NCBI GenBank assembly: GCA_002269645.1
Contig: NIVC01000535.1
Span: 1-64,000, forward strand
Reading direction: 5' to 3'
Source: Macrostomum lignano
Lineage: Eukaryota
DNA: 64,000 nt
A program made the translations under genes and the position numbers. Within the stretch, counting starts at the first letter, position 1. Every line of letters starts with the position of its first letter. The notes below the pieces were generated by a model. It made no database searches and was not told where the DNA came from. It was given only the letters and a program-made list of their open reading frames with translations. Positions 1 through 64,000 of the stretch are shown one piece after another.

Positions 1-170
1 CGTGGGCGTCGGAATCACGACTTAAAGCTTGGGGGTTCGATTCTCGATCCCACTGGAACAATTTGTATCCTTGAGCAAGACAATTACATGTAGCTCTGCA
101 GTGCTTCCCAGCTATAAAATTGTGCGCTTAGCATTCTCTCGAGAATGCGCAGGGTTTCGGGCCATAGACT
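1..170 (+). mobile_element. tRNA-derived SINE copy (5' part cut by window edge)
   Basis: B-box-like GGTTCGATTC followed by GAACAATTTGT..CCTTGAGCAAGACA; same block occurs in reverse orientation at ~44340-44400 and ~53125-53180. Confidence 0.7.
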
Positions 171-23348: not shown

Positions 23349-26603
<3,255 letters not shown>

Positions 26604-38900: not shown

Positions 38901-40429
38901 ACTAGGCTTAGGCACATTAGATAAAAATTGTAGGAAATGGATGCATGTACATGTAGAAATGCACATAATACATGTGTAGCTCGTATACACACAAATTCTT
39001 ATTATTTATTTATGCGAAATGGTTTTGTTACCTAAAAAGTCTTTTATTCTATAGTCGATGTAAATCTTTCACAATGCATTTTTCTGTCTAAACTATAATT
39101 TTTCCGTCATAATTTGTCACGACTAATTAACAATGCTCTTATGTCCAGAGTGAAATTAGCTCCTATTAGGCTGTTTTTATGATAAACTATGTGTGTATTA
39201 TGTAACAAAAAAATCTTTTGTAATAAATAATTTCTGTTAAGGACTACTATCCAACAATAATTTGTTAATCTGCGATACCACACGCTCGTAGTTCAAAATT
39301 TTTTTCAGGGAAGCAATGTTCACTCGTGGCCAACGAAACGTGACGTGTCTGTGTCAGTCGTGAGTCGTAGTGTTGTGTACTCGAATCTGTTGTCCGAGAT
39401 TCGGACAGGCTATAATCATCATTCCATTAATCAGACATAGTCCCTGTCATAATTGAGATCAAAAGTAAAATAAAAAACAGTTCTTTCGTAGTATGTTCCA
39501 GATCACGATTTGATTTCATAAGTCGGCTAGTCCTAAGGGAATTAAAAGCGAACCTTCTAATTCTTCTAAAATTCAAAATTTAAACCAATGTTTTATGTGG
39601 TATATTTGGAGTACAATAAACACGTCATTTTACAGAGACCTTAGCTTTTCACGAGCTTTACCGTTACCACAAAATCGCTTGAACTTTTCTTATTTCGTTT
39701 TTCTAGATATTTTAGTAACAGTAACCACTAAGGTTACAACCATTTTGCACGGACTGTATAGCCAAAACACTTCCTTTCAAAGGTTGTTCTTGTCTCCGTT
39801 GTTAACCACATCTAAAGCTCTTTTCTGGGAGTTATAACCAACAGTTCTCTAGTTCCATTAAATTTTTTTATTGAAAATCAGGAAAATTGATTTACAGATA
39901 CATATTTTACAAATAGTTATCTCGGATAAGAAAATATCTGGAACTGAATTGAAGGTACTTATGATTAAGATAAAATCTTAATCTATATTTCCTCGGAGAA
40001 GTACCCTTAGTACCGTTAACTAAGGTCTTGGTCTTAGCCAAACCTAAAGGTTCTTTTTTCGTCATAACATCACTGGAAGCGCTTGAAAGAAATCGCATAC
40101 TTATATCTTTAAAGGGTTATACCATTATAATTTATAAGATGCGAAAAGGACTTTAAAGGTAGTACAAGTGTTATAATAAGATGTGGCAGATACGTATCAA
40201 TTAATAATTAAATGTACTTAAGAACATAACATTGTGAATCAGTGATAAACTCGTTATGCATGTATGTTGAATCAAAACAATAATGTTACGTGTAAAAAGG
40301 TCTTGAAAGGCCTTTGGGGTTAAAGTAGATATTTATGTGCTTTGGTCTTTACGTTAATAAAATTCAAGAAAAGTTAGTGAGCTAACTGAGTTTATTTGTC
40401 TCGTAAGTTGACGATTTCAGAAATGTTGA

Positions 40430-43237: not shown

Positions 43238-44149
43238 ACTATTTAACTTTGTTGAATGTTTGACTGCCTTAATAGCCTCACTTTGCACAATTTTTCACTT
43301 TCTTATTGGCTATTGCCATTCATTAATCACAATTTTAAAGCACTAAATATCCCTCTAGTCTAGTTTAGGAGACAAAAAGTTAATACATTACAAATTGGTT
43401 CTGGTTCTAGAACCAGAACAAGCAATATAGAAAGCCTCAAAGAATAAATTTTAATATGTGATATGCATTATAATTAATGCTATTATTTCAATCATTATCA
43501 AGATTGTTAAAATTTATTATTTATTGTGAAATTAAACGGAATGGCATAATGTCCTAATAGTCTACTGTAATACTCTCATATGCGATTAGCCTAGGCTTGA
43601 TTTGCTTCTAAGTGCCATTATAATAAATTGGAACTAAATTGGAATCTAAGTTAAGTAGGCTTGCTTATATAAATAATGCTTTTAAAGGGCTATTCCCCAA
43701 GGCATAATAAAGTTTATATCCCTAATTATAAAATAGTTAAAATTATATACTCCTGTATGAGTATATGCCTATGCATAAGACTATACATGTTATAGGCTAA
43801 TAATGACCTATTTTTTGGCAATGGCTCATGGAAGGGGGCATAGTCTCATTGGCCCCTTTCTTTAGGTCTACTTTTGCATAGCCCTGTTCCTTATATTCAA
43901 TAAAAAATAATAGTAGTGTATCATAGTTTTGTTACTGTCCCAAATCTAAAGTCTTTTATGAAAATGATCCCTTATAATAAATATTCAGCACTTGATTCTG
44001 CAACAACTCTGAATGAATAAGAGTTTCATAACAAATAATAATAATATTAAATTATAAAAAAGGCAATAATAATTTCTATTGTTGCCTTATGAAATACTAA
44101 GGAAAATGTTAGAATATGAAACCAAGGCCTACTATGTAGTCAAACTTGT

Positions 44150-44410
44150 TAATCTATTTACAAACTCAGATATTTTTCTTGCAGACCTGCACTGTACTTT
44201 CTATTGGATTCACCTGTTTGTGCAGCACTTCTGAAGGCTATGTATGGCTGTTCAGGCCAAAGACTAGAAGGGGTTGCCACACACACCTTGCTGGTACCAA
44301 TTTTTATAGCTCAGAGAATAGAAGCTATGCGGAGTTAAATGTCTTGCTTAAAAACACAAATTGTTTTGAGTGAATCAAGAATCAAACCCCGACCTTTCAT
44401 TTGTGAGTCT
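44150..44410 (-). mobile_element. tRNA-derived SINE copy (body), head interrupted by 18-bp array
   Basis: Aligns by eye with 52990-53225 (CTGAAGGCT..GGCTGTTCAGG..CAAAG; GTCTTGCT..CACAAATTGTT; AACCCCGACCT). Confidence 0.7.
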
Positions 44411-45810
44411 AGGCTATAACCCCCTACTAGGCTACAACCCACTACTAGGCTACAACCCCCTACTAGGCTACAACCCCCTACTAGGCTACAACCCACTACT
44501 AGGCTACAACCCACTACTAGGCTACAACCCACTACTAGGCTACAACCCACTACTAGGCTACAACGCACTACTAGGCTACAACCCACTACTAGGCTACAAC
44601 CCACTACTAGGCTACAACCCACTACTAGGCCAGAACCCACTACTAGGCTACAACCATACAACCCACTACTAGGCTACAACCCACTACTAGGCCACAACCC
44701 TACAACCCACTACTAGGCTACAACCCACTACTAGGCCAGAACCCACTACTAGGCTACAACCCTACAACCCACTACTAGGCTGCAACCCACTACTAGGCTG
44801 CAACCCTAAAACTCACTACTAGGCTACAACCCACTACTAGGCCAGAACCCACTACTAGGCTACAACCCTACAACCCACTACTAGGCTGCAACCCACTACT
44901 AGGCTGCAACCCACTACTAGGCTGCAACCCACTACTAGACTGCAACCCACTACTAGGCTGCAACCCACTACTAGGCTGCAACCCACTACTAGGCTGCAAC
45001 CCACTACTAGGCTGCAACCCACTACTAGGCTACAACCCACTACTAGGCTACAACCCACTACTAGGCTGCAACCCACTACTAGGCTGCAACCCACTACTAG
45101 GCTGCAACCCACTACTAGGCTACAACCCACTACTAGGCTACAACCCACTACTAGGCTACAACCCACTACTAGGCTACAACCCACTACTAGGCTGCAACCC
45201 ACTACTAGGCTGCAACCCACTACTAGGCTGCAACCCACTACTAGGCTACAACCCACTACTAGGCTACAACCCACTACTAGGCTACAACCCACTACTAGGC
45301 TGCAACCCACTACTAGGCTACAACCCACTACTAGGCTGCAACCCACTACTAGGCTGCAACCCACTACTAGGCTGCAACCCTACAACTCACTACTAGGCCA
45401 CAACCCACTACTAGGCTACAACCCACTACTAGGCTACAACCCACTACTAGGCTACAACCCACTACTAGGCTGCAACCCACTACTAGGCTGCAACCCACTA
45501 CTAGGCTGCAACCCTACAACTCACTACTAGGCTACAACCCACTACTAGGCCAGAACCCACTGCTAGGCTGCAACCCTACAACTCACTACTAGGCTACAAC
45601 CCACTACTAGGCCAGAACCCACTGCTAGGCCAGAACCCACTACTAGGCCAGAACCCACTACTAGGCTGCAACCCTACAACCCACTACTAGGCTGCAACCC
45701 ACTACTAGGCTACAACCCACTACTAGGCTGCAACCCACTACTAGGCTACAACCCACTACTAGGCTGCAACCCACTGCTAGGCTACAACCCACTGCTAGGC
45801 TACAACGCCT
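44410..45810. repeat. 18-bp minisatellite derived from SINE A-box
   Basis: Unit CCACTACTAGGCTACAAC; ends with ACAACGCCT, the SINE 5' start. Confidence 0.96.
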
Positions 45811-46552
45811 TCAAGATGAAGAACAAGGGGCTGATTTTCGCGAAAACACCTATGTTGAAAAACTGATTTCCTTTTTAGTAGGCCAGATTTCTATCTTGAT
45901 TTACAATACTTGGCATTGTTACTGAATTTGTTATATTACATTATTACCCAATTTTCAGTAACATTACTTAATTCAAGTATAATTATGTCCCTTTCACCCT
46001 ATAGTTTCTCCTATCAGCAAAGACAGTAATCGATCTGATAGATCGCCCCCTCTTCTTTTTTAGTCGCTGTGCACGCTGTTCTTGCGTGGCAATGTCAGCT
46101 GCTGCTATTTAACTATATGAAAGCTATTGCCTAGACTCAGATATGGAAATATATCAATAAGAGTATAAAATAATTTGGGGAAAACATTTTCTAACTGGAC
46201 TGGGAATAAAAGAGGAAAATATGCTCAGCGCGTGACACTTGAGAACTGGTGCTCAACTGGATTCCCTTGTCTAACTAATCTTTTTGTTCACTTTCTATTT
46301 TTAGCTCTAGTATGTATTTAATCAAACAGATTATTCTCAATATCGTCCTTTCTGGCTTATAGCCTAAATGCTGGTGCATGCTGTCATGTAGAGCACGCGT
46401 GACTGCACTTTTATTTGCTGATTCGGAGAGGCCGGATTCGGCGATCCAGGGAGCGGAGACCCAGAGGCAGATTGAAATGTAGATCTACTAGTGCAAAAAA
46501 TGTTCAAACTGTCTTAATACTAATAAAACATTGACACAGGGATCTTGACATA

Positions 46553-47100
46553 GAGGCACATTCTCAAGGACTGAGGCAGCGGAGAGGCACATTCTCAAGG
46601 ACTGAGGCAGCGGAGAGGCAGATTCTCAAGGACTGAGGCAGCGGAGAGGCAGATTTTCAAGAACTGAGGGAGCAGAGAGGCAGATTCTCAAGAACTGAGG
46701 GAGCGGAGAGGCAGATTCTCAAGGACTGATGGAGCGGAGAGGCAGATTCTCAAGGACTAATGGAGCGGAGAGGCAGATTCTCAAGGACTAATGGAGCGGA
46801 GAGGCAGATTCTCAAGGACTAATGGAGCGGAGAGGCAGATTCTCAAGGACTAATGGAGCGGAGAGGCAGATTCTCAAGGACTGAGGGAGCGGAGAGGCAG
46901 ATTCTCAAGAACTGAGAGAGCGGAGAGGCAGATTCTCAAGGACTGAGGGAGCGGAGAGGCAGATTCTCAAGAACTGAGAGAGCGGAGAGGCAGATTCTCA
47001 AGAACTGAGAGAGCGGAGAGGCAGATTCTCAAGAACTGAGAGAGCGGAGAGGCAGATTCTCAAGGACTGATGAAGCGGAGAGGCAGATTCTCAAGGACTA
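46553..47100. repeat. 31-bp minisatellite
   Basis: Unit GAGAGGCAGATTCTCAAGGACTGAGGCAGCG. Confidence 0.95.
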
Positions 47101-47214
47101 ATATAGGCAGGATAAGGAGAATGGGCTAATAAGCCTGCTTCATGTGTTACAAATTTGTACATGCAGCAGATAGCATTTACCTTATGTAACACCCTCTAAC
47201 ACCCCTCCCGACAG

Positions 47215-50200
47215 CTCCAGCTGTGGGATACGGCAGGCCAGGAGCGCTTCCGCCAGTCAATGCTGCCGCACTATTATCGCAACGTGCACGCAGTTGTGTT
47301 CGTCTATGACGTCACTAAACTAACGTCCTTTAATAATCTTGGCGGCTGGCTGCGTGAATGCGATCAGCACTATCTGCCGCCCGAGGTGCCCCGGCTGCTT
47401 ATTGGGAACAAGTGCGACGAGACGGCGCGTGTTAGCACTCAGGTGAGCTTATACCATCCAGTGCAGTTCCCTTAGGGAAGCTTTACCATCCAGTGCAGTT
47501 CCCTTAGGGAAGCTTTACCATCCAGTGCAGTTCCCTTAGGGAAGCTTTACCATCCAGTGCAGTTCCCTTAGGGAAGCTTTACCATCCAGTGCAGTTCCCT
47601 TAGGGAAGCTTTACCATCCAGTGCAGTTCCCTTAGGGAAGCTTTACCATCCAGTGCAGTTCCCTTAGGGAAGCTTTACCATCCGGTGCAGTTCCCTTAGG
47701 GAAGCTTTACCATCCAGTGCAGTTCCCTTAGGGAAGCTTTACCATCCAGTGCAGTTCCCTTAGGGAAGCTTTACCATCCAGTGCAGTTCCCTTAGGGAAG
47801 CTTTACCATCCAGTGCAGTTCCCTTAGGGAAGCTTTACCATCCGGTGCAGTTCCCTTAGGGAAGCTTTACCATCCAGTGCAGTTCCCTTAGGGAAGCTTT
47901 ACCATCCAGTGCAGTTCCCTTAGGGAAGCTTTACCATCCAGTGCAGTTCCCTTAGGGAAGCTTTACCATCCAGTGCAGTTCCCTTAGGGAAGCTTTACCA
48001 TCCGGTGCAGTTCCCTTAGGGAAGCTTTACCATCCAGTGCAGTTCCCTTAGGGAAGCTTTACCATCCAGTGCAGTTCCCTTAGGGAAGCTTTACCATCCA
48101 GTGCAGTTCCCTTAGGGAAGCTTTACCATCCAGTGCAGTTCCCTTAGGGAAGCTTTACCATCCGGTGCAGTTCCCTTAGGGAAGCTTTACCATCCGGCGC
48201 AGTTCCCTTAGGGAAGCTTTACTATCCAGTGCAGTTCCCTTAGGGAAGCTTTACCATCCGGCGCAGTTCCCTTAGGGAAGCTTTACTATCCAGTGCAGTT
48301 CCCTTAGGGAAGCTTTACCATCCAGTGCTGAAGCTTTACCATCCAGTGCAGTTCCCTTAGGGAAGCTTTACCATCCGGTGCAGTTCCCTTAGGGAAGCTT
48401 TACCATCCAGTGCTGAAGCTTTACCATCCGGTGCAGTTCCCTTAGGGAAGCTTTACCATCCAGTGCAGTTCCCTTAGGGAAGCTTTACCATCTGGTGCAG
48501 TTCCCTTAGGGAAGCTTTACCATCCGGTGCAGTTCCCTTAGGGAAGCTTTACCATCCAGTGCTGAAGCTTTACCATCCGGTGCAGTTCCCTTAGGGAAGC
48601 TTTACCATCCAGTGCAGTTCCCTTAGGGAAGCTTTACCATCCAGTGCAGTTCCCTTAGGGAAGCTTTACAATCCGGTGCAGTTCCCTTAGGGAAGCTTTA
48701 CCATCCAGTGCTGAAGCTTTACCATCCGGTGCAGTTCCCTTAGGGAAGCTTTACCATCCAGTGCAGTTCCCTTAGGGAAGCTTTACCATCCAGTGCTGAA
48801 GCTTTACCATCCGGTGCAGTTCCCTTAGGGAAGCTTTACCATCCAGTGCTGAAGCTTTACCATCCGGTGCAGTTCCCTTAGGGAAGCTTTACCATCCGGT
48901 GCAGTTCCCTTAGGGAAGCTTTACCATCCAGTGCTGAAGCTTTACCATCCGGTGCAGTTCCCTTAGGGAAGCTTTACCATCCAGTGCAGTTCCCTTAGGG
49001 AAGCTTTACCATCCAGTGCAGTTCCCTTAGGGAAGCTTTACCATCCGGTGCAGTTCCCTTAGGGAAGCTTTACCATCCGGTGCAGTTCCCTTAGGGAAGC
49101 TTTACCATCCAGTGCAGTTCCCTTAGGGAAGCTTTACCATCCAGTGCAGTTCCCTTAGGGAAGCTTTACCATCTGGTGCAGTTCCCTTAGGGAAGCTTTA
49201 CCATCCAGTGCAGTTCCCTTAGGGAAGCTTTACCATCCGGTGCAGTTCCCTTAGGGAAGCTTTACCATCCGGTGCAGTTCCCTTAGGGAAGCTTTACCAT
49301 CCAGTGCAGTTCCCTTAGGGAAGCTTTACCATCCGGTGCAGTTCCCTTAGGGAAGCTTTACCATCCAGTGCTGAAGCTTTACCATCCGGTGCAGTTCCCT
49401 TAGGGAAGCTTTACCATCCAGTGCAGTTCCCTTAGGGAAGCTTTACCATCCGGTGCAGTTCCCTTAGGGAAGCTTTACCATCTGGTGCAGTTCCCTTAGG
49501 GAAGCTTTACCATCCAGTGCAGTTCCCTTAGGAAAGCTTTACCATCCGGTGCAGTTCCCTTAGGGAAGCTTTACCATCTGGTGCAGTTCCCTTAGGGAAG
49601 CTTTACCATCCAGTGCTGAAGCTTTACCATCCGGTGCAGTTCCCTTAGGGAAGCTTTACCATCCAGTGCAGTTCCCTTAGGCAAGCTTTACCATCCGGTG
49701 CAGTTCCCTTAGGGAAGCTTTACCATCTGGTGCAGTTCCCTTAGGGAAGCTTTACCATCCAGTGCAGTTCCCTTAGGGAAGCTTTACCATCCAGTGCATT
49801 TCTCTTAGGGAAGCTTTAACATCCAGTGCTGAAGCTGTACCATCCGGTGCAGTTCCTCATAGTAACTCATTACACGCAATAATCATGGGCCAATCCAGGC
49901 TGCTCAGCGCTTCGCCGACCAGCACAGCATGCCGGTATTTGAGACCAGCGCCAAAGACGACTCCCGGTCCGACCACGTTGAATCGATATTTTTAACCCTG
50001 GCCCACAAGCTTGTTACTAGCAGGCCGCTGATGACTCGCTCCTATAGCGAAGTGATGAACGATTCCAGCGTCAGTCTGCACAAGCATCGCAACGGTAGCG
50101 GCGGTCGTCGGCGAAGGTCAACGTCGGCGTCTGTCAATGGACGAGGCGTGAACGACACTTCGGCCTACTATGCGGTTGAATCGTCAGAAGAAGAAGAGGA

Positions 50201-50216
50201 ATTCTGCGGTTGCTAA
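47215..50216 (+). CDS. RAB33: Rab33 small GTPase, 5'-partial; exons 47215-47442 and 49899-50216
   Basis: [71 protein letters not shown]-terminal CGC prenylation motif; phase-0 GT-AG intron. G1/G2 exon not located. Confidence 0.9.
47450..49855. repeat. 32-bp minisatellite (with 21-bp deletion variants) filling the Rab33 intron
   Basis: Unit CCATCCAGTGCAGTTCCCTTAGGGAAGCTTTA. Confidence 0.97.
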
Positions 50217-50423
50217 AATATATACTCGTTTTAGCCTACTTGACTAGTAGCAATGACAATATTTTTTTCGCCAAAGTATTGGTATCTAACTGAAGGAGTA
50301 TTGTGCTTCTATGAAATCTTGCTGCTTTTAATCTGTGCATTATTTATATATTAGATGTATAAGGCCAAAGACAGTTTACTGTACGACTGTACTGTACGAG
50401 TCCTTTGGACGTTAGGCTTTTAA

Positions 50424-51930
50424 ATACACTATTAGATAGAATGCTTGGGTCATACACTATTAGATAGAATGCTTGGGTCATACACTATTAGATAGAATGC
50501 TTGGGTCATACACTATTAGATAGAATGATTGGGTCATACACTATTAGATAGAATGATTGGGTCATACACTATTAGATAGAATGATTGGGTCATACACTAT
50601 TAGATAGAATTCTTGGGTCATACACTATTAGATAGAATGATTGGGTCATACACTATTAGATAGAATGATTGGGTCATACACTATTAGATAGAATGATTGG
50701 GTTATACACTATTAGATAGAATGATTGGGTCATACACTATTAGATAGAATGATTGGGTCATACACTATTAGATAGAATGATTGGGTCATACACTATTAGA
50801 TAGAATGATTGGGTCATACACTATTAGATAGAATGATTGGGTCATACACTATTAGATAGAATGATTGGGTCATACACTATTAGATAGAATTCTTGGGTCA
50901 TACACTATTAGATAGAATGATTGGGTCATACACTATTAGATAGAATGATTGGGTCATACACTATTAGATAGAATGATTGGGTCATACACTATTAGATAGA
51001 ATGATTGGGTCATACACTATTAGATAGAATTCTTGGGTCATACACTATTAGATAGAATGATTGGGTCATACACTATTAGATAGAATGATTGGGTTATACA
51101 CTATTAGATAGAATGATTGGGTCATACACTATTAGATAGAATGATTGGGTCATACACTATTAGATAGAATGATTGGGTCATACACTATTAGATAGAATTC
51201 TTGGGTCATACACTATTAGATAGAATGATTGGGTCATACACTATTAGATAGAATGATTGGGTCATACACTATTAGATAGAATGCTTGGGTCATACACTAT
51301 TAGATAGAATGATTGGGTCATACACTATTAGATAGAATGATTGGGTCATACACTATTAGATAGAATGCTTGGGTCATACACTATTAGATAGAATGATTGG
51401 GTCATACACTATTAGATAGAATGATTGGGTCATACACTATTAGATAGAATGATTGGGTCATACACTATTAGATAGAATGATTGGGTCATACACTATTAGA
51501 TAGAATGATTGGGTTATAGACTACTGGAACGAATGATTGGGCCATAAAGTATTAGATTGAATGATTTGACCACAGACTATTAGATAAAATAATTGAGCCA
51601 TCGACTATTAATTAGAATGATTGGGCATAAGCCTTAGACTATAGGATAAAGATTGAGCCATAGACTATTAAATAGAATAATTGGACCATAGACTATTGGA
51701 TAGAATGATTGGACCATAGACTATTGGATAGAATGATTGGACCATAGACTATTGGATAGAATAATTGGACCATAGACTATTGGATAGAATGATTGGACCA
51801 TAGACTATTGGATAGAATGATTGGACCATAGACTATTGGATAGAATGATTGGACCATAGACTATTGGATAGAATGATTGGACCATAGACTATTGGATAGA
51901 ATGATTGGACCATAGACTATTGGATAGAAT
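50424..51930. repeat. 28-bp minisatellite, two sub-blocks
   Basis: TACACTATTAGATAGAATGATTGGGTCA then TAGACTATTGGATAGAATGATTGGACCA. Confidence 0.96.
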
Positions 51931-52989
51931 GATTTGCTATAGACTAATTGATAGAGATAGGCTATTGCATACTATTGTATAGTGATTGGGCCAAAGACTT
52001 AAGAGTGTTTTATAACTTTTGCCCGCTTATTATTGGTTGATTTAGTGTTAAAAAGTTCTGTACAGTTTCAGTTTCATTTCATTCTATAAGTATCAATGTT
52101 TATTCCATTAAATTTTAACACGTTTTTTGTTTAAAATGAACTTGTAGCATCTGCTTGAATGTTTCACTCACTACTTCTGGTAGCATGATGTGCTTATTTT
52201 ATTCAGTAACATATCGGTTTCACCTTGAGCTTAGGAATGTCACCCAGTGTAAAATTGTCTTAAACTTGGCGAAAATCATGCTATTGTCACAATCCTTACT
52301 GACTATTCCATAGCGTCGTTTTTATTTTAAAATTCAAGCAAACTTTATAAACTTTTTTCACTACTCGGTTCAAAATTGCTAATTAATTTGCGTATTTTAC
52401 TGCATTTATAGCAATTTATATTTATTCTCGTGCCTACTACTTATGGTCATTAGTAAATCAGTAGTAGACGCGTGTTTGCCCACTTTTTTCTATTGGTAAT
52501 GCAGGTAATGCCTTGATCTATTTGCCTTTTGGAAATCCGGTTTTCTTCTTATCTTCCAGAGCTATCGTGTTGATTTTTTATGCTGCTGTTCCTTGTCAAT
52601 TTTTTATGAAGTTATTAATCCCCTTGTAAATTCTTGTCGCTAATAAATTTTCTAATTTCCTTTTTTATTGTCTTTCTTCATATGTTGTTGTTTTACTGCA
52701 TAAGTAAATATTAGTTCTGATTGGCAGTTCTTAGCAGCACCATTTTTTTCGTTTGTTCTTTTTTTCTCTGTCGTTCACTATTGTTAATTAAACTGTTTAA
52801 ATTGTTTAAAATCATTTTCAAGTACAGTTCGGCATTGACATTTTAAATAAAAAATCCGCTCGCATCTCTTTACAAGCAATTTTTCCTGCTAGCCTACTAT
52901 AGAGTAGGCTTTGTAGTTTATTATTCTTTTGAGTCTCGTTGGATTGGTTAGGATTTAGTTAGTAACATAAAAGCAGCAACTGTAGCAGC

Positions 52990-53225
52990 ACAAAAGATGC
53001 TGCTCTGAAGGCTGCGTACGGCTGTTCAGGACAAAGTCTTGGGGGGGGGGGTTCGCAACACACCCTCAGTTACTCCAGCTGGCACTTATTATACAGCTGG
53101 TTGAACTGAAACATTGCAGAGTTGCGTGTCTTGCTCAAGGGCACAAATTGTTCGGATTGGGTCGAGATTCGAACCCCCGACCTCTTGTTTTTGAGTCTGA
53201 CACTGGCCACTAGGCTACAACGCCT
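52990..53225 (-). mobile_element. tRNA-derived SINE, best-preserved copy
   Basis: Minus strand GGCGTTGTAGCCTAGTGG (A box TAGCCTAGTGG), GGTTCGAATCT (B box), then CCTTGAGCAAGACAC CORE-like block. Confidence 0.8.
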
Positions 53226-53229
53226 TTAC

Positions 53230-54230
53230 TGGGCTACAACCCCTCACAAGGCTGCAACCCCTTCACTAGGCTACAGCCCCTCACTAGGCTACAACCACTC
53301 ACTAGGCTACAACCCATCACTAGGCTACAACCCCTCACTAGGCTACAACCCATCACTAGGCTACAACCCCTCACTAGGCTACAACCCATCACTAGGCTAC
53401 AACCCCTCACTAAGCTACAACCCCTCACTAGGCTACAACCCATCACTAGGCTACAGCCCCTCACTAAGCTACAACCCCTCACTAGGCTACAACCACTCAC
53501 TAGGCTACAACCCATCACTAGGCTACAACCCCTCACTAGGCTACAACCCATCACTAGGCTACAACCCCTCACTAGGCTACAGCCCCTCACTAGGCTACAA
53601 CCCATCACTAGGCTACAACCCCTCACTAGGCTACAACCCATCACTAGGCTACAACCCCTCACTAGGCTACAACCCATCACTAGGCTACAACCCCTCACTA
53701 GGCTACAACCCATCACTAGGCTACAACCCCTCACTAGGCTACAGCCCCTCACTAGGCTACAACCCCTCACTAGGCTACAACCCCTCACTAGGCTACAGCC
53801 CCTCACTAGGCTACAACCCCTCACTAGGCTACAACCCCTCACTAGGCTACAGCCCCTCACTAGGCTACAACCCCTCACTAGGCTACAACCCCTCACTAGG
53901 CTACAACCCATCACTAGGCTACAACCCATCACTAGGCTACAACCCATCACTAGGCTACAACCCATCACTAGGCTACAACCCCTCACTAGGCTACAACCCT
54001 CACTAGGCTACAACCCCTCACTAAGCTACAGCCCCTCACTAGGCTACAACCCATCACTAGGCTACAACCCCTCACTAGGCTACAACCCATCACTAGGCTA
54101 CAACCCCTCACTAGGCTACAACCCATCACTAGGCTACAACCCATCACTAGGCTACAACCCATCACTAGGCTACAACCCATCACTAGGCTACAACCCCTCA
54201 CTAGGCTACAACCCTCACTAGGCTACAACC
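53230..54230. repeat. 18-bp minisatellite derived from SINE A-box
   Basis: Unit CCC(C/A)TCACTAGGCTACAAC-type, abutting the SINE 5' end. Confidence 0.96.
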
Positions 54231-54404
54231 TCGATATACTCAGGGCTGAAACTTCATCACATTGCTTCTCTGACCGAAAGTCGAACCCGGGGCACGTCTG
54301 TACGAAAGCCGCAACTACAAGCTGTGAAGGGTCTCTGTGGGATCAATTTCTTTTGAAATTTGCTCAAGCCGATTCTGGATACTCTGCACTGTTACTTCCG
54401 CTTC

Positions 54405-57400
54405 ATGGCGGGCTTCACTCTGCAGCAGCCAATTGAAGAGCAGCTGCGCACACCGGCTCAGCTAGCCTACATCAAGGAGCTGCTCAATGGCAGACTGTTT
54501 GCTCCTAGTAGCAGTAGCGGCGGCAGCACAGGTGGGCTCAGCTTCGATCCCGAGCGGTGCTCCGTCCTGCTGCTGCACGCGGGCCCGATTCGTCGGGAGA
54601 GTCAACAGCCGGCCGCTTCCTCGTCGATGCTGGCAGCTGCGGCTAGCGGCAACGACGCGCCAAGGATTGGCGGCGGCGTTTTGGAGATGGATTCGTCAGT
54701 CATGTCGATGTCGGACGTTGACGACGATCTTGACGACGATCAGCGTGGGCCGCTTCGATTGAATAAAATCGCCGACCTCAGCGGCGTCGGGCCCTGTCTG
54801 GAGCCGCCGGCTACGCCTGCCGATGGACTCGGCGACGATCCCGATGCTGCCGCAGGCGACGACTCGATGGCCAGCCTGGCCGACCAGCTGAGCGCCCGGC
54901 TGCCCTTCAGGCCGCTCAGCCTCGCCGCGGCCAATGTCGCCCTGGCCGAGCGGGCCGCCGCCCTGGCCAGTGGCAGCGGCGTCCAGCAACAGGTCTGTTG
55001 TGTTTATGACCCTCTGTTGTATTTATGACCCTCCGTTGTATTTATGACCCTCCGTTGTGTTTATGACCCTCTGTTGTGCTTATGACCCTCCGTTGTGTTT
55101 ATGACCCTCTGTTGTATTTATGACCCTCTGTTGTGTTTATGACCCTCTGTTGTATTTATGACCCTCCGTTGTATTTATGACCCTCTGTTGTGTTTATGAC
55201 CCTCTGTTGTATTTATGACCCTCCGTTGTATTTATGACCCTCCGTTGTGTTTATGACCCTCTGTTGTGCTTATGACCCTCCGTTGTGTTTATGACCCTCT
55301 GTTGTATTTATGACCCTCTGTTGTGTTTATGACCCTCTGTTGTATTTATGACCCTCCGTTGTATTTATGACCCTCCGTTGTGTTTATGACCCTCTGTTGT
55401 GCTTATGACCCTCCGTTGTGTTTATGACCCTCTGTTGTATTTATGACCCTCTGTTGTGTTTATGACCCTCTGTTGTATTTATGACCCTCCGTTGTATTTA
55501 TGACCCTCCGTTGTATTTATGACCCTCCGTTGTGTTTATGACCCTCTGTTGTGCTTATGACCCTCCGTTGTGTTTATGACCCTCCGTTGTATTTATGACC
55601 CTCCGTTGTGTTTATGACCCTCTGTTGTGCTTATGACCCTCCGTTGTGTTTATGACCCTCTGTTGTATTTATGACCCTCTGTTGTGTTTATGACCCTCTA
55701 TTGTGCTTATGACCCTCCGTTGTATTTATGACCCTCCGTTGTATTTATGACCCTCCGTTGTATTTATGACCCTCCGTTGTATTTATGACCCTCCGTTGTA
55801 TTTATGACCCTCCGTTGTATTTATGACCCTCCGTTGTATTTATGACCCTCTGTTGTATTTATGACCCTCCGTTGTATTTATGACCCTCCGTTGTATTTAT
55901 GACCCTCCGTTGTATTTATGACCCTCCGTTGTATTTATGACCCTCCGTTGTATTTATGACCCTCCGTTGTAGTTATGACCCTCCGTTGTATTTATGACCC
56001 TCCGTTGTGTTTATGACTCTCCGTTGTATTTATGACCCTCCGTTGTGTTTATGACTCTCCGTTGTATTCATGACCCTCCGTTGTCGTTGTGTTTATGACA
56101 CTCTGTTGTGCTTATGACCCTCTGTTGTGTTTATGACTCTCTGTTGTGTTTATGACCCTCTATTGTGCTTATGACCCTCTATTGTGCTTATGACCCTCTA
56201 TTGTGCTTATGACCCTCCGTTGTATTTATGACCCTCCATTGTGCTTATGACCCTCTGTTGTGTTTATGACCCTCTATTTTGTTTACGACCCTCTGTTGTG
56301 TTTATGACCCTCTGTTGTGCTTATGACCCTCTATTGTGTTTACGACCCTCTGTGTGTTTATGATTCTGTTGTGTTTATGAGCCTCAGTAAGCTTTTCCCA
56401 CCCTCAACATTTGCAGTCTTATTATATTATCCTTTCTGAAGTACATCTGTATAATACTATTAAGTATGAGCCTTAATTAACTGGCATATGGCAACTCTCC
56501 GCGCACTGCTCAGCAGGTCATTCTGGCGCTCTGCTTGGCTGAGTCTCCCACCGACCCGCTGCTCCGCGGCCTCATTGTGGAGCCGGGCAGGCGGGCCACC
56601 GTTGCTGCCGCCTCAACTACTCAACCGCCTGCTCAGCAGCCGCCGAAGACTCAGCAGGTTCGAATTCTCAGCCTGCGAGAACTGGCCTGCGCTCAACCGC
56701 GAGACCGCCTGCCCAGCCTCGATGAGCTGCTTGATCGACTCGCCGGAGCGCCGCTGCTGCCCGCGCCGCAGTTCGACGTCCGCGCCACCTACCTGCTGTT
56801 CAGCTCCGGCGATCACGACGGCACCCAGGTGACGTTCTGCGCCACTTATCCCGGAGCTCATTGTGCCAGGCTGTTCGAGCCGCCTCCCAGGCTGTGCAAT
56901 CCGCTCGGCTGTTTGAGCGTGCGGCCTCGGCCCTGGTTACCGGGCAGCTGCGCCAGATACCTGGCTGCCCACCTGGCCGTGTTGAAACAGCTCCACGGAG
57001 CCGTTGAACGAGAGGAGCGCGTCTGGAGTCTCACTGGTCGGGCTGCTGGCACTTTCCAAAGCTTTGCTACTCGATTGGCTGGACTGCTCAGGTGAGTCAG
57101 GCTCGTCAGTTCGATGATTGTCTGACATTGATTTTGTCAGATTTAAATTTTTGTTGGCATTTGTTTTGCCAGATTTATTCAATGTGTCAAATCAACAAGC
57201 CTATGATTGTCAGTCAGGCATTTGATTGTCAGCCAATGTCATGTAGGACCCATGCAATTGTCAGACGATGTCATGTCAGACCCATGCGATTGTCAGACGA
57301 TGTCATGTCAGACCCATGCAATTGTCAGACGATGTCATGTCAGACCCATGCAATTGTCAGACGATGTCATGTCAGACCCGTGCGATTGTCAGACAATGTC

Positions 57401-60200
57401 ATGTCAGACCCATGCAATTGTCAGAGGATGTCAGGCCGCCAGTACCAAAAAAGCTACGCCCAAATCCCGCAGATCACTGAACATCGAGGTGCCGCCTCAG
57501 CTGTTGTCAGCGGCCGAGGCCGGCAGCGGAGGTGGCGCAGACGCTCAGCCGCTCGGCGACCTGACGAACAACTTGAACAACGCTTCAGTGGTGAGTCATC
57601 TGCCCACCGGCCACGCCGCCGCCCCGTCCGCCAACGCCGCCGTCGCTGCGGCTGCCGCTGCCGCTGCCGCTTCCGGCGGCGGCATTGAAGAAGAATTCGA
57701 AGCGGATGGCGACGGCGAGATTTGTCGATTGCTGCGCAGTAGAAAACCGGATTTGGTTGAGCTGCTTTGGCTGCTGGCCAGGGATGTGCAGTGCGCCGCC
57801 AGTCTCAGGCGCTGCTTTGAGCTCTACCTGCGGGTGGTCAACACCTGCTCGGGTGAGTTCCGTAGCTTAGAAAGGTCTAATCTCTGGGCATCTCCTTTGT
57901 TATCTCACTGAATCAGTTTATCTCTGGCATTCTCCATTAACAGCTTTGAGAATCTCTATCGACAGTTCTGGAAGTCCCTATTCGTAGACTTAGAAATACC
58001 TTACGACATCTCTGGGAATCCCCATCCACATCCCTGGGAATCCCCATCCACATCCCTGGGAATCCCTATCGACATTTTTGGGAATCCCTATCGACATCTT
58101 TGGAAATCCCTATGGAAATTTGTGGGAATCCCCATCCAGATCTCTGGGAACCCCATCCACATCCCTGAAAATCCCCATCCACATCCCTGGGAATCCCTAT
58201 CGACATTTTTGGGAATCCCTGTCGACATCTTTGGGAATCCCTATCGAAATTTGTGGGAATCCCCATCCAGATCTCTGGGAACCCCATCCACATCCCTGAG
58301 AATCCCCATCCAAATCCCTGGGGATCCCTATTGACATTTTTTGGAATCCTCATTCACATACCTGGGAAACCCCATCCACATCCTTAGGAATCCTCATCCA
58401 CATACCTAGAATCCCCATCCACATCCCTGGGAATCCCCATCCACATACCTGGAATTCCCTACCTACATCTCTTGGAATCCCCATCCACATCATCTCTGGG
58501 AATCCCTATCGAAATTTGTAGGAATCCCCATCCACATCCCAATCGACATCTTTGGAATTCCCAGCAGTAACTCAGGAAATCTCTAATACCCCAAAATGTG
58601 ATGTCAGTTTGCAGTGTAGCTGTTCCCCCTTTAAGGCTTTCGCTCCGCCTACCAGCTGCACCAGCGCAACTGGACCCAGCTGGCCCGCTGCGTGCGCTCC
58701 CAACAGTCCAGCCTGGACTCATTCAGCTGCCCGCATCTGCTGCTGCAACTGGGCGCCTATCGGCTGCAAGAGAGCCTGGTGCACCTGCTGGTGTGCGCCC
58801 ACCCCATGCTGGACACCCAGCAGCTGGCCGAGTTCGCCGCCGGCCCAGCTTTCGACTGCGCCATCCCGGCCCGGCTGGAGCGGCTGGACCGCCTGCTGCA
58901 TCTCTGCGAGGCCGCCTTCTCTCTGGCTAGGAGCTGCCTGCCGGCCGCCAGGTGAGACAGACGCTAAGGCAGACACTAAGGCAGACACTAAGGCAGACAC
59001 TAAGGCAGACACTAAGGCAGACACTAGGACAGACACTAAGGCAGACACTAAGACAGACACTAGGACAGACACTAAGGCAGACACTAAGACAGACACCGCA
59101 ACAGACACTAAGACAGACACTAAGGCAGACACTGCAACAGACACTAAGGCAGACACTAAGACAGACACCGCAACAGACACTAAGACAGACACTAAGGCAG
59201 ACACTAAGACAGACACTAAGACAGACACCGCAACAGACACTAAGACAGACACTAAGACAGACACTAAGGCAGACACTAAGACAGACACCGCAACAGACAC
59301 TAAGACAGACACTAAGGCAGACACTAAGACAGACACTGCAACAGACACTAAGGCAGACACTAAGACAGACACTGCAACAGACACTAAGGCAGACACTAAG
59401 ACAGACACTGCAACAGACACTAAGGCAGACACTAAGACAGACACTAAGGCAGACACTAAGACAGACACTGCAACAGACACTAAGGCAGACACTAAGGCAG
59501 ACACTAAGACAGACACTAGGACAGACACTAAGGCAGACACTAAGACAGACACTAAGACAGACACTAAGGCAGACACTAAGGCAGACACTAAGGCAGACAC
59601 TAAGGCAGACACTAAGGCAGACACTAAGGCAGACACTGCAACAGACACTGCAACAGACACTGCAACAGACACTAAGGCAGACACTAAGACAGACACTAAG
59701 ACAGACACTAAGGCAGACACTAAGACAGACACTAAGGCAGACACTAAGGCAGACACTAAGACAGACACTAAGGCAGACACTAAGACAGACACTGCAACAG
59801 ACACTAAGGCAGATACCCTTGCTCCCCCCTCAGAGTGGGCAAGCTCGTGCGCGAATTCCTGAGCCTGCTGGCAGCCGGCCGGGGCAACCACTTGGAATTC
59901 ACCGCCGACGTCGAAGCCAACGAAGCCGGCTGTGAGCTGCCGCTGCGCTGGGAGCTGCTGGCCGACCAGCGCGCCGGCCGGGCCTGCCAGGCCAGCCGCG
60001 TCGTTATCGAGGCCTGCCGACGTCGCCGCTTCCGTCAGCGCGCCGGCCGTCAAGTTGGCAAGATTGACGACATCATTGACGGCGACTGCGGTGTCGTCGG
60101 AGCCGGCGCTGCTGCCGTCTACCGCTGCTCGGTGGGCACCGACTGCCGGCTGGCCGCGCGCTCCGGCGGCGCCCTGCCCGCCGATGTTGTCGACGAATGA
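54405..60200 (+). CDS. ZWILCH: probable Zwilch (RZZ kinetochore complex); exons 54405-54992, 56517-57091, 57425-57852, 58636-58951, 59834-60200 (2274 nt, ~757 aa)
   Basis: Phase-consistent GT-AG model; C-terminal half resembles Zwilch from memory: PDLVELLW..SLRRCFELYL (cf. DLDFAEQLW..LVKCFTLII), LHQRNWTQLARCV (cf. LHSGSNSLLSKLI), LLQLGAYRLQES (cf. LLEIGLDKLKKD), RLERLDRLLHLCE, P-x-RW. Not confirmed by search. Confidence 0.6.
54995..56380. repeat. 19-bp minisatellite in Zwilch intron 1
   Basis: Unit TATTTATGACCCTCCGTTG, starting right after the donor. Confidence 0.96.
57235..57432. repeat. 32-bp minisatellite at the 3' end of Zwilch intron 2
   Basis: Unit GATGTCATGTCAGACCCATGCAATTGTCAGAC, ~6 copies. 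Confidence 0.9.
58010..58560. repeat. ~22-bp degenerate minisatellite in Zwilch intron 3
   Basis: GGGAATCCCCATCCACATCCCT-based units. Confidence 0.88.
58955..59812. repeat. 12-bp minisatellite filling Zwilch intron 4
   Basis: Units AGACACTAAGGC / AGACACTAAGAC / AGACACTGCAAC. Confidence 0.96.
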
Positions 60201-60833
60201 CAAAATGAAGATTGGTCCTATAGAAATTTGTGCTTTACAAAGTTAACTACGCAACATATCGTTAGTTTAAAAAATCCTAATGTCTATCGCAGTCGAAAGC
60301 TTCAGAAACTTTATTATAACTCAACCAGCTGTTTTCCAACTCATTAACGCATACAACGTGTTGCATTTTGTTATAATTTATTTAACTAAAGCTACAATCG
60401 GTTTGCAATTATTATATTATTTTTATTACAATTTTCGCATTTTTGTTTACCTTCTATTTTGGTTCATTCTAGCAACATAATATTTATGGGTTTGACGATT
60501 TCTAATCTGCAGTCTATGCGCTTAATTTATTTATCTGTATCTACGGCTAGCTTTTCTCTGCCAGATTTGCTCGCTCTATTCTTTACCTGCACATGATTCG
60601 GGAATCGCATTGAAAAGTTAACACCAAGACGGTCACAACTCAATAATTAATGCTCTTGTTGTCTGTGTGTCATTTTGTCTCTTAAAATCTTGATTTGTTA
60701 ATTTAGCTGACTGGCTATCCAGCCACAGTATAGTTTACCCAGACGCAGCTACATGTATCTATCAATTGGGTAAAAGCTGCATAGCTTGATGTAGATGCAA
60801 ATTCGCCGACCGTTTTTCCCAATTCCAGTCCGA

Positions 60834-61154
60834 ATGCGCCTCAGCCTCTCTCTGTTCGCCCCAGTTGGCCAGGAGTTGAAGCGCGGCCGCTTGGGCCCGC
60901 ACTATCCTCGGCTGCGCAGAAGCTACCGCATGCTAGCTGGCGTGGCCTTCGTTGGCTGCAGCTGCATAGCCGTATATGTCGGCAGTCTGTTGCGCGCAGA
61001 CGTGGCCGCAGCCACTGACGAGGCGGAAGCCTTGCGAAGACTGGAACGCGACTTTTCTAGGGGTCGGGATCGATCACTAGATGCCGGGCCCTTCAAAACT
61101 CCGCTGCACTTTCGGCTGAGCAATGCGGTTGACGAAGATATTAAGATTCGTTAA
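60834..61154 (+). CDS. single-exon ~106-aa predicted single-pass membrane protein, unknown family
   Basis: GC-rich ORF in AT-rich flanks; basic N-terminus, hydrophobic MLAGVAFVGCSCIAVYVGSLL, charged helical tail; acceptor-like TTTTTCCCAATTCCAG 5 nt before ATG. Confidence 0.6.
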   Translation: MRLSLSLFAPVGQELKRGRLGPHYPRLRRSYRMLAGVAFVGCSCIAVYVGSLLRADVAAATDEAEALRRLERDFSRGRDRSLDAGPFKTPLHFRLSNAVDEDIKIR

Positions 61155-62483
61155 TAAGACTTGAATAATTAATTCGTTCTAATCGTACTTTTTAGCTCGT
61201 ATGTAAAAGTCATTCGCGAAGTAGCTTAATACTAAAGCAGCAACACATGTTGTATATGTAGATAACATTAACTTTGCCACTATTCTATTCAAGTCCATGG
61301 AATGTACATGCTTGCAAAAAATACATATCCTCGTGCACGTTGACTCTAGCTAAAAGTGTATGCATGTCAAATTGGATTTGGATTTGATATCTATACAGTC
61401 TATACATTTATACAGAAACGTCTTTTCTTAGCTATATATTATATTTTGATATCAATTAGTGCTGAGCTGAAGTAATTTCCCTCCTTTCCTAGCCTATAGA
61501 TCATTAGCAACATTGCGTAATAACAAACAAAACGTGTTATCAAAACAGTACTGCAACTTGTCGCAACAGATGTGTTAAAACGGGTTAAAAAAAAGTGGGT
61601 AATTGCGATTAAACCTGGGAAATAAAGTAATTTTTAAAGCATTTAATGATCGATTAGCTTTTTTCATAAAAGTTATTGTTGTCATTCAGCGTTTTGAAAA
61701 TAGTTCCGTCCGCGCGGCCGAGGATAAAAATATTCCTGAATCATTAAGTCTATTAATCCTATATAAAGAACTATAGGTCTAATTCACTTATTCATATAAT
61801 TCATTCAGCTAGCTCTTACCTAACTCCAACTCTGAATAAACATAGCCTAAGTGGCGAGATTTTCGGTGTTAAAATTATATTTTTATAAAAAAAACAAAAT
61901 ACACAATTTTTTAATGCAAAACGATTGAAATAGACGAAAGAATGTTTTATAAAAACAAATAATTATTTTTTTACTTGAAAAAATAGTTCGCTCTGCGTTT
62001 TTTAAAAACACCCAGAAGCATTACTTTGCATATTTTAATTACAACATCTGCATTTCTAGAAATTCCGTCAGTCAGTCGACAGTAAGCTGTTCTGAATTAT
62101 AATGGTTCTTTTTACTTTGTAAAATTATCTACGAGCCTATTATCTGCAGGAATAATTGACTGCGAGCCAACTGCATGCTGTAGAATGGCTTTTTAGCACA
62201 TCCCCAAGCCAATGTTGGCTCGAACAATCGATGACGATGACACGACCGCCGACCGGGTCGACCCCACTCGAGTAATTGTAATTGTAATGCAAATTGTAAT
62301 TTTGAAGTAGATGAAATGTAAATTGTAAGATGTAATTATATTGCTTATAGAAAATTATTGTACAAACGATTGATTATTGTTATCTGGAAGTGTTAGGCAA
62401 TCTTTAAGATATGCATAGGCCTAGGCCTACCATATAATATAAGCAGCTATGCATATTGCATACCCCCATAGGCAGTTGTTATT

Positions 62484-62605
62484 GCAGGCAATTTTCGCTG
62501 CATGCCATTAGCATTGCTTGCAGGCAATTTTCGCTGCATGCCATTAGAATTGCTTACAAGCAATTTTCGCTGCATGCCATTAGAATTGCTTGCAGGCAAT
62601 TTTGA
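62484..62605. repeat. 36-bp tandem repeat, ~3.5 copies
   Basis: GCAGGCAATTTTCGCTGCATGCCATTAGCATTGCTT. Confidence 0.85.
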
Positions 62606-63759
62606 ACTAGCAATTGTGAATTTGATTAAACTGATTTAATTTAACTATAAATTTAATTTTTAAAAATGCAGTTTTTGTCATGCACATCAAACAAGTGACA
62701 AGATTAGCCTAAATGCTTATAAAGATATCATAGGCCCCCAAAGTGATAGAAGGTAAACCCCAAACCCAAAACACTGACTCTGAAACCAAAACCCAACTTG
62801 GACCCTGTACCTAGAACCCAGAACTCCACCTGGACCTAAACCTACCCAACCAACCCTAAACTTTTCCTAAGAGGAGAATATTTTATCTTAGGCTTTTTGT
62901 AATAATCTTTTATAAATGACAATTGAACTTGAAGGGAATTATTCATCCTGAGATACCTCTAGTAGTCTACTTCTTGCTCTCTAGTTCTGACTCCCTAACT
63001 CCTAGGCCTATTCTAGTTATTAGCTTAAGTCTTTATTCCTTTCTTCTCTATAATCTAATCTAACTTCTTAAGATCTTATTCAGTTATTCTTAGCATTGAC
63101 TTTAATATCTACTTAGAAGAGGGGCTATCATTATTTTTACCAACTTGGGTTTAAGTTATCATTGTTAGTGCAACATCTAAATCTACCTTAATGAAGAATT
63201 TAAAAAAATAGGTATAAATAAGCTAATCTTTAATTTTTTAATTAAAAATTTACATCTACTCCAAAAACAAAAAATGACCATTATTTATTATTATAATTAT
63301 TAATAATTATTGCATAGCATAGGTTTAACCAAATGAGGACTATATGTAATAGGCGCAGTTAAGAAGACTTGGCAATTGGCATTGATGAGCAATCCAACTA
63401 TACTAAATGTCTAAGATTTGTCTTCCTCCCATATACTAAAAATAGTTTGTTGGTAGGTAGGTACCTATGTGATAAATTAGAGAAAAAATGGCTTAACCAA
63501 TTTTCATGAGACTTGCATAGTTGCACCAGTTGTTCAATTAGAAATTTTCTGGTGATAGTACATGTGTCTTGACTAAGAAATTGCTTGATGCTAAAGGGAT
63601 TAAATACTCAAAAACATGCTTTTTAGCAAAAGTCAAGCAAACTTTTTGACTTGAAATGCTTTGTAAGAATGCTAGAAAAAACTGACTGGTTGAATTTTGA
63701 TTCTAAATTAAAATTTTAATGTCAAGAAAAGTAAAATACTTTTTAAAAAGAAGTGTCAT

Positions 63760-64000
63760 GTAAAAATCATAGAAACATCAGGTAAACAATCATAGAAGTG
63801 TCATAAAAAATCATAGAAGCATCATGTAAAAAATCATAGAAGCGTCATGTAAAAAAATCATAGAAGTGTCATGTAAACAATCATAGAAATATCATGTAAA
63901 CAATCATAGAAGCGTCATAAAAATTATAGAAGTGTTTTGCCGAAAGTCATAGAAGTGTCATGTGAAGAATCATTGAAGTGTCATATAAACAATCATAGAA
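63760..64000. repeat. ~23-bp degenerate tandem repeat running off the window
   Basis: AATCATAGAAGTGTCATGTAAAC-type units. Confidence 0.85.

Follow-up and report, generated by a model that had tools for sequence, protein, structure and literature searches.

The stretch analysed here (hereafter the window) comprises positions 1–64,000 of contig NIVC01000535.1 from the Mlig_3_7 assembly (GCA_002269645.1) of the flatworm Macrostomum lignano. Joined exons from downstream of array 2 matched two proteins only, both of M. lignano, and the DNA of the contig encoding the better match is 100% identical to positions 44417–64000 of the window. It carries a Rab33 gene, a second gene downstream of it, and two arrays of 18-bp tandem repeats, designated array 1 and array 2, each adjoining a copy of a short interspersed element (SINE). 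Array 1 and its element, SINE1, are located inside a long Rab33 intron, and array 2 and SINE2 lie 3 kb past the Rab33 stop codon, between Rab33 and the next gene. The arrays are about 7.4–8.8 kb apart and on the same strand. The units of both derive from the 5′ end of the SINE. The coordinates of the features are listed in Table 1.

The genome in question is rich in repeats. Simple and tandem repeats account for 15% of the Mlig_3_7 assembly, and duplicated blocks at least 95% identical total 180 Mb (PMC5730564); the genome size was taken as about 760 Mb. Within the window, Tandem Repeats Finder (TRF) assigned 36% of the bases to tandem repeats, including 28 large arrays whose units are unrelated and whose periods span 4–73 bp; many of these sit in the introns of Rab33 and of the gene downstream of array 2. 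Two of the 28 are SINE-derived, and none of the other 26 has a period of 18 bp. This genome, then, makes minisatellites from many kinds of sequence.

Rab33 and the proteins clustering with it led to two more copies of the whole region in the same assembly: L002 (NIVC01002579.1), about 97.6% identical to the window, and L005 (NIVC01001210.1), mostly 87–94% identical to it. Both arrays are present in both copies, so that each of the two loci could be followed through three duplicated copies of the region; therefore the arrays are older than these duplications, and both are old. At an older Rab33 paralogue locus, L003, no synteny was found for the arrays. The window, L002 and L005 all come from one long-read assembly, and the exact unit counts may carry assembly error.

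Table 1. Main features of the window (positions in the window) and numbers of array units in the three copies of the region
Feature	Position	Strand	Units (window/L002/L005)	Description
Array 2	53226..54231	-	56/70/57	Tandem 18-bp units, consensus GTTGTAGCCTAGTGAGGG; based on TRF, unit maps and exact-core count
SINE2	52985..53225	-		Old CORE-type copy, putatively tRNA-derived, with intact head; 3′ boundary approximate (end of SINE1 homology)
Predicted Pol III box A, SINE2	53207..53217	-		TAGCCTAGTGG, 11/11 to TRGCNNAGTGG; nt 8–18, from tRNA position 8
Predicted Pol III box B, SINE2	53165..53175	-		GGTTCGAATCT, 10/11 to GGTTCGAANCC; about 50 nt into the element
CORE-domain match, SINE2	53118..53145	-		TGTGCCCTTGAGCAAGACACGCAACTCT aligned to the MIR core TGTGACCTTGGGCAAGTCACTTAACCTCT
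Array 1	44409..45810	-	73/72/41	18-bp period, consensus GTTGTAGCCTAGTAGTGG
SINE1 body	44220..44408	-		SINE2-type 3′ module; box B decayed (GGTTTGATTCT)
SINE3	1..142	+		Third family copy; head cut off by the contig start
Rab33, last two exons	47209-47442, 49899-50216	+		
Downstream gene	54405..60200	+		PAA81370.1, BOX15_Mlig008676g5; annotated as partial from 54417; orphan

Array 2 is a tandem extension of the SINE2 head

When array 2 was split on its core sequence, 56 units and the SINE head were obtained, with unit lengths of 18 bp in 52 cases, 17 bp in two and 19 bp in two. TRF returned an 18-bp period at 53208–54230 with 56.8 copies, 93% matches, 0% indels and a score of 1755, a span that takes in the first 17 nt of the SINE2 head. 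Exact matches to the 13-mer GTTGTAGCCTAGT number 80 across the window, compared with 0.00 expected from shuffled sequences, and all of them are on the minus strand and inside arrays 1 and 2. Besides the consensus unit, array 2 contains a frequent GATGG variant.

Rotated to the register of the element, the unit of array 2 reads A-GGGG-TTGTAGCCTAGTG and the outermost unit ATCG|A-GG-TTG, while the SINE2 head itself reads (A)GGCGTTGTAGCCTAGTGGCCAGTG..., that is, A-GGCG-TTGTAGCCTAGTGGCCAGTG... The unit thus equals SINE nucleotides 1–17/18, in register and contiguous with the head. The original prediction, made from the letters of the window, had placed an array of about 55 copies immediately 5′ of a head that was intact, A and B boxes included, had traced the units to the SINE 5′ end and its A box, and had regarded the carrier as a second copy of the same SINE. 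All of this was borne out: box A and box B of RNA polymerase III (Pol III) are both present next to the 56 units, and SINE2 belongs to the same subfamily as SINE1, with which it shares its 3′ module.

The carrier SINE and its 5′ end

A sequence profile built from the copies recovered three family members in the window (SINE1, SINE2 and SINE3). A fourth, clean copy, SINE4, was found at the paralogous Rab33 locus (L003, 21722–~21975, plus strand), giving four distinct copies in about 100 kb. SINE4 is flanked on both sides by the 9-bp target site duplication (TSD) TACAATTAA, begins with A-GGGGG-TTGTAGATTAGTGGTTAGAGCG (A-GGGGG-TTGTAG) right after it, has a single head and ends in an (ATT)n-like tail. 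Because the TSD stands just before A-GGGGG in this clean copy, it fixes the 5′ end of the SINE. The same A and G-run open SINE4, the SINE2 head and the outermost units of arrays 1 and 2. Three SINE 5′ ends were readable altogether, two of them with arrays and one without; these numbers, and the 2 SINE-derived arrays among 28, are what the region offers on the originally suggested SINE-to-satellite factory.

In SINE4, as in SINE2, boxes A and B occupy tRNA-like positions, and the designation of the family as putatively tRNA-derived rests on these two boxes and their spacing. ARAGORN reported no tRNA gene at the SINE head, and Rfam gave no tRNA match at 52900–54450, either at the gathering score or at E ≤ 10. 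Decayed SINE heads are often missed by tRNA models.

The MIR core oligonucleotide (PMC6344866) was aligned to the SINE copies and the scores were compared with those of 500 shuffles. SINE4 (...TTGTGTCCTTGAGCAAGGCACTTAACTCTGCATTGCTTCAGTTCACCCAGCTGTAAAATGGG...) matches it at 25 of 29 positions with a score of 40, compared with a shuffle maximum of 31; SINE2 scored 32 against a maximum of 28, and SINE1 is too decayed (22, compared with 25 for shuffles). Judging from these alignments, the carrier element is a CORE-SINE with a MIR-like core. The 3′ module is common to SINE1 and SINE2, and SINE3 and SINE4 carry other modules. SINE1 and SINE2 are 68–70% identical, a similarity no greater than that of either to the remaining copies, and SINE3 and SINE4 are 86% identical. 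The literature searched contained no account of Macrostomum SINEs or of any flatworm CORE-SINE.

Two further signals near SINE2 were considered and rejected. The Rfam match to mir-875 at 53054–53124 on the minus strand (25 bits, compared with a gathering score of 84) corresponds to a hairpin, CAGCTG...CAGCTGG, in the SINE body and not to a miRNA. The B-box-like sequence GGGTTCGACT at 54270–54340 on the minus strand was supported as a second SINE head neither by the SINE profile nor by the tRNA tools; it sits in the stretch ..GCTTGTAGTTGCGGCTTTCGTACAGACGTGCCCCGGGTTCGACTTTCGGTC.. just past the outer edge of array 2, is kept in L002 and L005, and may be due to chance. As a separate observation, a gene called at 22703–24412 of L003, with SINE4 about 750 bp upstream of it, encodes a product matching the endonuclease/exonuclease/phosphatase family. 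It could be a fragment of ORF2 (open reading frame 2) of a long interspersed element (LINE), and hence a candidate partner LINE.

Array 1 and the ancestral position of both arrays

Array 1 was counted at about 74 units in the window, and at 73 in the three-copy comparison. Its outermost unit still bears the SINE 5′ end, A-GGCG-TTGTAGCC (TTGA|A-GGCG-TTG). The main unit of array 1 is A-GTGGG-TTGTAGCCTAGT, and the inner-edge unit in the window is A-GGGGG-TTGTAGCCTAGT. Both arrays therefore appear, from their edges and from the shared A and G-run, to be tandem copies of the first ~18 SINE nucleotides, probably with nothing taken from the flank. Nine units of array 1 are 26 bp long owing to an extra GTTGTAGG octamer (window 44600–45600). 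In L005 (12324–13177), 26-bp units form a different higher-order repeat, with periods of 62–88 bp and a CCTAATAGTGG variant.

At the junction of array 1 with SINE1, the window and L002 have lost about 15 nt of the head, a segment that reads TGGTTACAGCGCCAG in L005, while in L005 an intact head (GTTGTAGCCTAGTGGTTACAGCGCCAGACTCAC; GTTGTAGCCTAGTGGTTACAGCGCCAGACTCACAAATG...) follows directly after the array. Conversely, array 2 of L005 meets the body at ...GTAGCC|TCCGAACAATTTG, the entire head including box B having been deleted together with diverged inner units. The intact head of array 1 in L005 and that of SINE2 in the window together indicate that both arrays ancestrally lay directly 5′ of an intact head. 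The different position of the two arrays relative to the head, emphasised in the original prediction, thus holds for the window, where array 1 joins the SINE body, but it is not ancestral: since L005 retains the intact head at array 1, the difference is a secondary, lineage-specific deletion. The array/head junction is deletion-prone.

Turnover among the three copies of the region

Comparison of array 2 between the window and L002 revealed that the outer ~8 and the inner ~17 units are identical, while the interior is reshuffled into other higher-order patterns, alternating and three-unit ones: (BA)n and (AAC)n in the window, and (AC)n in L002. The mean identity of units to the array consensus is 0.93–0.97. 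The GATGG unit of array 2 occurs 31 times in the window and L002 together and in none of the 57 units of L005, and the GTTGCAGCC unit of array 1 is likewise absent from L005. At the same time, each array has retained its own consensus spacer in the window, L002 and L005; the predicted spacer difference, GAGG/GATG-type in array 2 as opposed to the array 1 consensus, is therefore real and stable in three copies. Both arrays undergo local, ongoing minisatellite turnover, there has been no detectable exchange between them since the region copies split, and most of their length arose after insertion through local gain and loss of units.

The arrays have the properties of minisatellites whose tandem repeats vary in number (VNTR): a unit in the range of ~10–100 bp, tens of copies, and a copy number that varies among three contigs of one assembly. 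They also have those of SINE-derived minisatellites, since the units match part of a SINE and run on into its head and body (array 2; array 1 in L005). Array 2 is thus a minisatellite derived from a SINE head, and the conversion of a transposon into a minisatellite is already known as a kind of event.

The comparison also bears on whether the arrays could have been created by PacBio mis-assembly or a collapsed repeat, given that long-read assemblies are prone to error over long homogeneous arrays. The array with the same outer flank recurs in three separately assembled contigs, the inner-edge units are identical in the window and L002, and the contigs differ by substitution-type unit variants and not in length alone. 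We give an assembly artefact almost no credence.

When four-unit stretches were folded as single-stranded DNA, neither strand of array 2 stood out (z = 0.9 and 0.15), and mild structure was seen only on the G-rich strand of array 1 (z = -2.2); hairpin-driven slippage was dropped as an explanation. Large differences in unit number were also observed at two other loci. A 32-bp array in a Rab33 intron comprises ~75 units (2.4 kb) both in the window (47446–49856) and in L002, and has 2.6 units in L005 (15000–15082); a 19-bp array at 54997–56385 has 73 units, compared with 13 in L005. These pairs look like a proto-array and an expanded state of the same loci.

Origin of the arrays

That both arrays originated from SINE heads and grew by local expansion is, in our view, close to certain; that their seeds were in addition not independent of each other makes for a broader claim, which we consider probable. 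According to the proposed scheme, the first ~18 nt of an old CORE-type SINE (the A, the G-run and box A up to AGTG) would have been tandemly duplicated directly before the intact element. A source element of the SINE1/2 subfamily may already have possessed such a short head duplication, of two to three units; each insertion would then have inherited it, and expansion to tens of units would have proceeded separately at each locus. Remodelling inside the array continues, probably through replication slippage or unequal exchange. A second box A placed 18 bp farther from box B is within the spacing tolerated by Pol III, and therefore a head duplication could be transcribed and inherited. The inherited seed is the most economical form of a common cause and the likeliest single reading; taken specifically, it is a tentative proposal to which we assign somewhat less than an even chance.

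One alternative is that two slippages occurred independently after insertion, each SINE duplicating its own head by chance and then expanding it. The junction trinucleotides would fit this history, as they differ between the arrays and neither has changed since the divergence of the three copies; so would the strong divergence of the SINE bodies with their unrelated flanks, the many sources of minisatellites in this genome (28 large arrays in 64 kb), and the 32-bp array, with 2.6 units in L005 and ~75 in the window. However, a triple coincidence would be required, involving the 18-bp period (found in 0 of the 26 other arrays), the 5′-terminal segment and the position before an intact head, and SINE heads cover only ~0.1% of the window and yet seeded 2 of its 28 large arrays. 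We regard this explanation as unlikely. Because period, segment and position are all shared and two chance slippages are improbable, a common cause is more likely, whether the source SINE passed on a duplicated head or seeding was tied to the 5′ end. The originally suggested independence of the two arrays is weakened accordingly.

Seeding tied to the 5′ end could take place at retrotransposition, as originally suggested, if the LINE reverse transcriptase jumped or re-primed at the 5′ end of the RNA and recopied ~18 nt, leaving a short array that expanded later. The unit reads as the exact 5′-terminal stretch from its first base, the differing junction bases could be non-templated additions, and the same design is seen on two insertions. 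At neither locus, however, was a TSD detected around the SINE together with its array, and SINE4, the clean TSD-bearing copy, lacks the duplication. To our knowledge, template jumps go to RNA 3′ ends and not to an internal position 18, which counts against this route as well; it would also explain a short seed at most, the bulk of the array being post-insertional. Such seeding appears quite improbable. More speculative is a length-measured seed, in which the reverse transcriptase would jump repeatedly onto the 3′ ends of ~18-nt 5′ fragments of the SINE or tRNA head, resembling the tRNA-derived fragments tRF-5 and cut in the D loop right after AGT(G), so that insertions would be born with (nt 1–18)n. 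We consider this a long shot; if true, the SINE family would supply 18-bp minisatellites to the whole of a genome that consists to 15% of tandem repeats.

Finally, one array may have seeded the other, by ectopic gene conversion or unequal recombination of the like-oriented SINE heads or by an old local duplication of SINE and array. The arrays lie close together on the same strand in a genome of hundreds of megabases and have their period and design in common. Derivation of both loci from one segmental duplication, an alternative raised together with the original prediction, was examined and rejected, since the SINE bodies are 68–70% identical and no similarity between the flanks reached E < 0.01. 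The ~70% identity of the bodies, which does not exceed their identity to further family copies, and the absence of flank homology speak against any transfer between neighbours, as does the fact that each array kept its own spacer in three diverged copies. A transfer of this kind is very unlikely.

Several points weigh against a shared, inherited seed and are set out together. A proto-duplication was not observed directly, the SINE1/2-subfamily members seen being SINE1 and SINE2 only. In SINE4, the one clean copy with a TSD, although of a different 3′ module, the head is not duplicated. The two arrays disagree in their junction bases (TAGT-AGNGG versus TAGT-GAGGG), and a shared seed would need two substitutions or a pair of indels followed by homogenisation. 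Some ambiguity attaches to the phase of a tandem unit, and it is from the array edges and the A before the G-run that a start at nt 1 is deduced. TSDs enclosing SINE1 or SINE2 with its array, proposed earlier as a sign of expansion at insertion, were sought with exact k-mers, local alignment and shuffles; nothing above chance was found, while the SINE4 control was recovered.

Searches beyond the region added no further copies. Sampling look-ups with transposon ORFs of the window (a 381-aa RNase H and a 374-aa gag-like protein) found neither on record, and a look-up with the 107-aa downstream gene matched the window's own contig only. Translations of the array (GCSLVR, LGYNPS and TRLQPL frames) produced one spurious match among 5.8 billion proteins, and a pattern of two units had 0 matches in JGI metagenome contigs.

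The downstream gene and other neighbouring features

The original prediction had placed array 2 about 170 bp upstream of the ATG of a Zwilch gene and had suggested an effect on its promoter. The distance was confirmed, 174 bp separating the end of the array from the ATG at 54405. The ATG itself (54405–54407) is not conserved, being CTG in L002 (~24828) and L005 (~19843) and CAG (Q) in a UniRef model. The GenBank model is partial in the window; that of the third copy is complete and takes as its start a Met ~150 codons further in. One public UniRef model of 845 aa splices the last Rab33 exon to the downstream gene across SINE2 and array 2; this fusion hints at read-through or polycistronic transcription.

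The identification as Zwilch found no support. No Pfam family was matched at E ≤ 0.1 by the predicted proteins P0001 (encoded by 54417–60200) and P0002, and P0124 and P0126 gave a noise match to PAC1 at E ≤ 1 only. A sequence search of the PDB with the downstream protein returned a single match at E = 9.2, and among 1.84 billion representative proteins its only relatives were its own M. lignano paralogue(s). The AlphaFold model, with a pLDDT (predicted local distance difference test) of 37, was too poor for a fold search. UniRef labels the protein 'UDENN domain-containing', while Pfam finds nothing; it could conceivably be a very diverged Zwilch. With the ATG not conserved, Zwilch unsupported and one model reading through from Rab33, the argument for a promoter effect is weak.

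A piece of a long terminal repeat (LTR) retrotransposon occupies 39331–43439 in a Rab33 intron, with ORFs at 40653–41777 and 41931–43346 (gag-like DUF7041; reverse transcriptase and RNase H). It is present in the window and L002 and absent from L005 (window 39316 corresponding to L005 9685, and window 43439 to L005 10371), and is an insertion polymorphism among the duplicated copies. Another RNase H ORF was found at 25367–26512 of the window.

Significance and comparison with known systems

M. lignano is a regeneration model with an unusually repeat-rich genome, and the locus bears on the question of what seeds its arrays. It is a clear and datable case, in which the parent SINE head is still attached and three diverged copies record both turnover and the decay of the junction by deletion. 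Should the SINE subfamily regularly carry 18-bp head arrays, it would constitute a defined, heritable source of minisatellites, and flatworms would join squamates and mammals among the hosts of SINE-derived tandem repeats. On the practical side, the arrays are probably usable as VNTR markers, and they are hazards for assembly, primer design and gene models near Rab33 and its neighbour.

With respect to the carrier, the CORE-SINE superfamily includes MIR, Mar1, AFC, BflSINE1, octopus OR1 and the BivaCORE-SINEs (Gilbert and Labuda 1999; PMC4824008), and such elements have been recorded in vertebrates, lancelet, octopus and bivalves, with interchangeable 3′ modules (PMC4824008). The element described here resembles them in its head with A and B boxes, its CORE (..TGTG-CCTTG-GCAAG-CACTTAAC..CTGTAAAATGGG..) and its interchangeable 3′ modules, a likeness that concerns the carrier and not the array.

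The closest parallel to the arrays is offered by the SINE-derived satellites of squamates, sSat (Vassetzky, Kosushkin, Ryskov 2023, PMC10702118). In both systems the units are a portion of a tRNA-derived SINE, a longer terminal unit runs on to the terminus of the SINE, locus-specific subvariants occur and often alternate, and homogeneity is higher among the units than among copies of the SINE (PMC10702118). The authors of that study also argue for a non-random genesis of the satellites from SINEs (PMC10702118). However, the sSat units are far longer, for example 67 nt from positions 42–108 including box B (PMC10702118), as compared with 18 bp from the extreme 5′ end with box A here, and the host in our case is a flatworm, the carrier a CORE-SINE and the unit of minisatellite size. 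sSat arrays are typically subtelomeric or heterochromatic; those of M. lignano lie in a gene intron and between genes, on an unplaced contig.

Human Alu minisatellites and the unstable mouse VNTR derived from B1 (Jurka and Gentles 2006; Ahmed and Liang 2012; Bois et al. 1998; reviewed in PMC9659126) likewise arose by amplification of a short internal SINE segment in place and vary in copy number between alleles or copies. The examples tabulated in that review come from middle or 3′ parts, from A-rich regions or from a B1 GAGGCA dimer (PMC9659126), in contrast to the 5′-terminal 18 nt with box A, present on two copies, in the window. The amphibian repeats PolIII/TAN and Hy/PolIII and Xenopus satellite 1 are, as here, tandem repeats containing a tRNA-like Pol III promoter sequence; their units of 200–750 bp comprise a whole tRNA-like region of doubtful link to SINEs (PMC10702118), whereas the M. 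lignano arrays repeat a box A fragment that is still attached to its parent SINE. Particular to the present case are therefore the host phylum, the CORE-SINE carrier, the 18-nt unit confined to the 5′ end and box A, and the identical design on two copies of the element.

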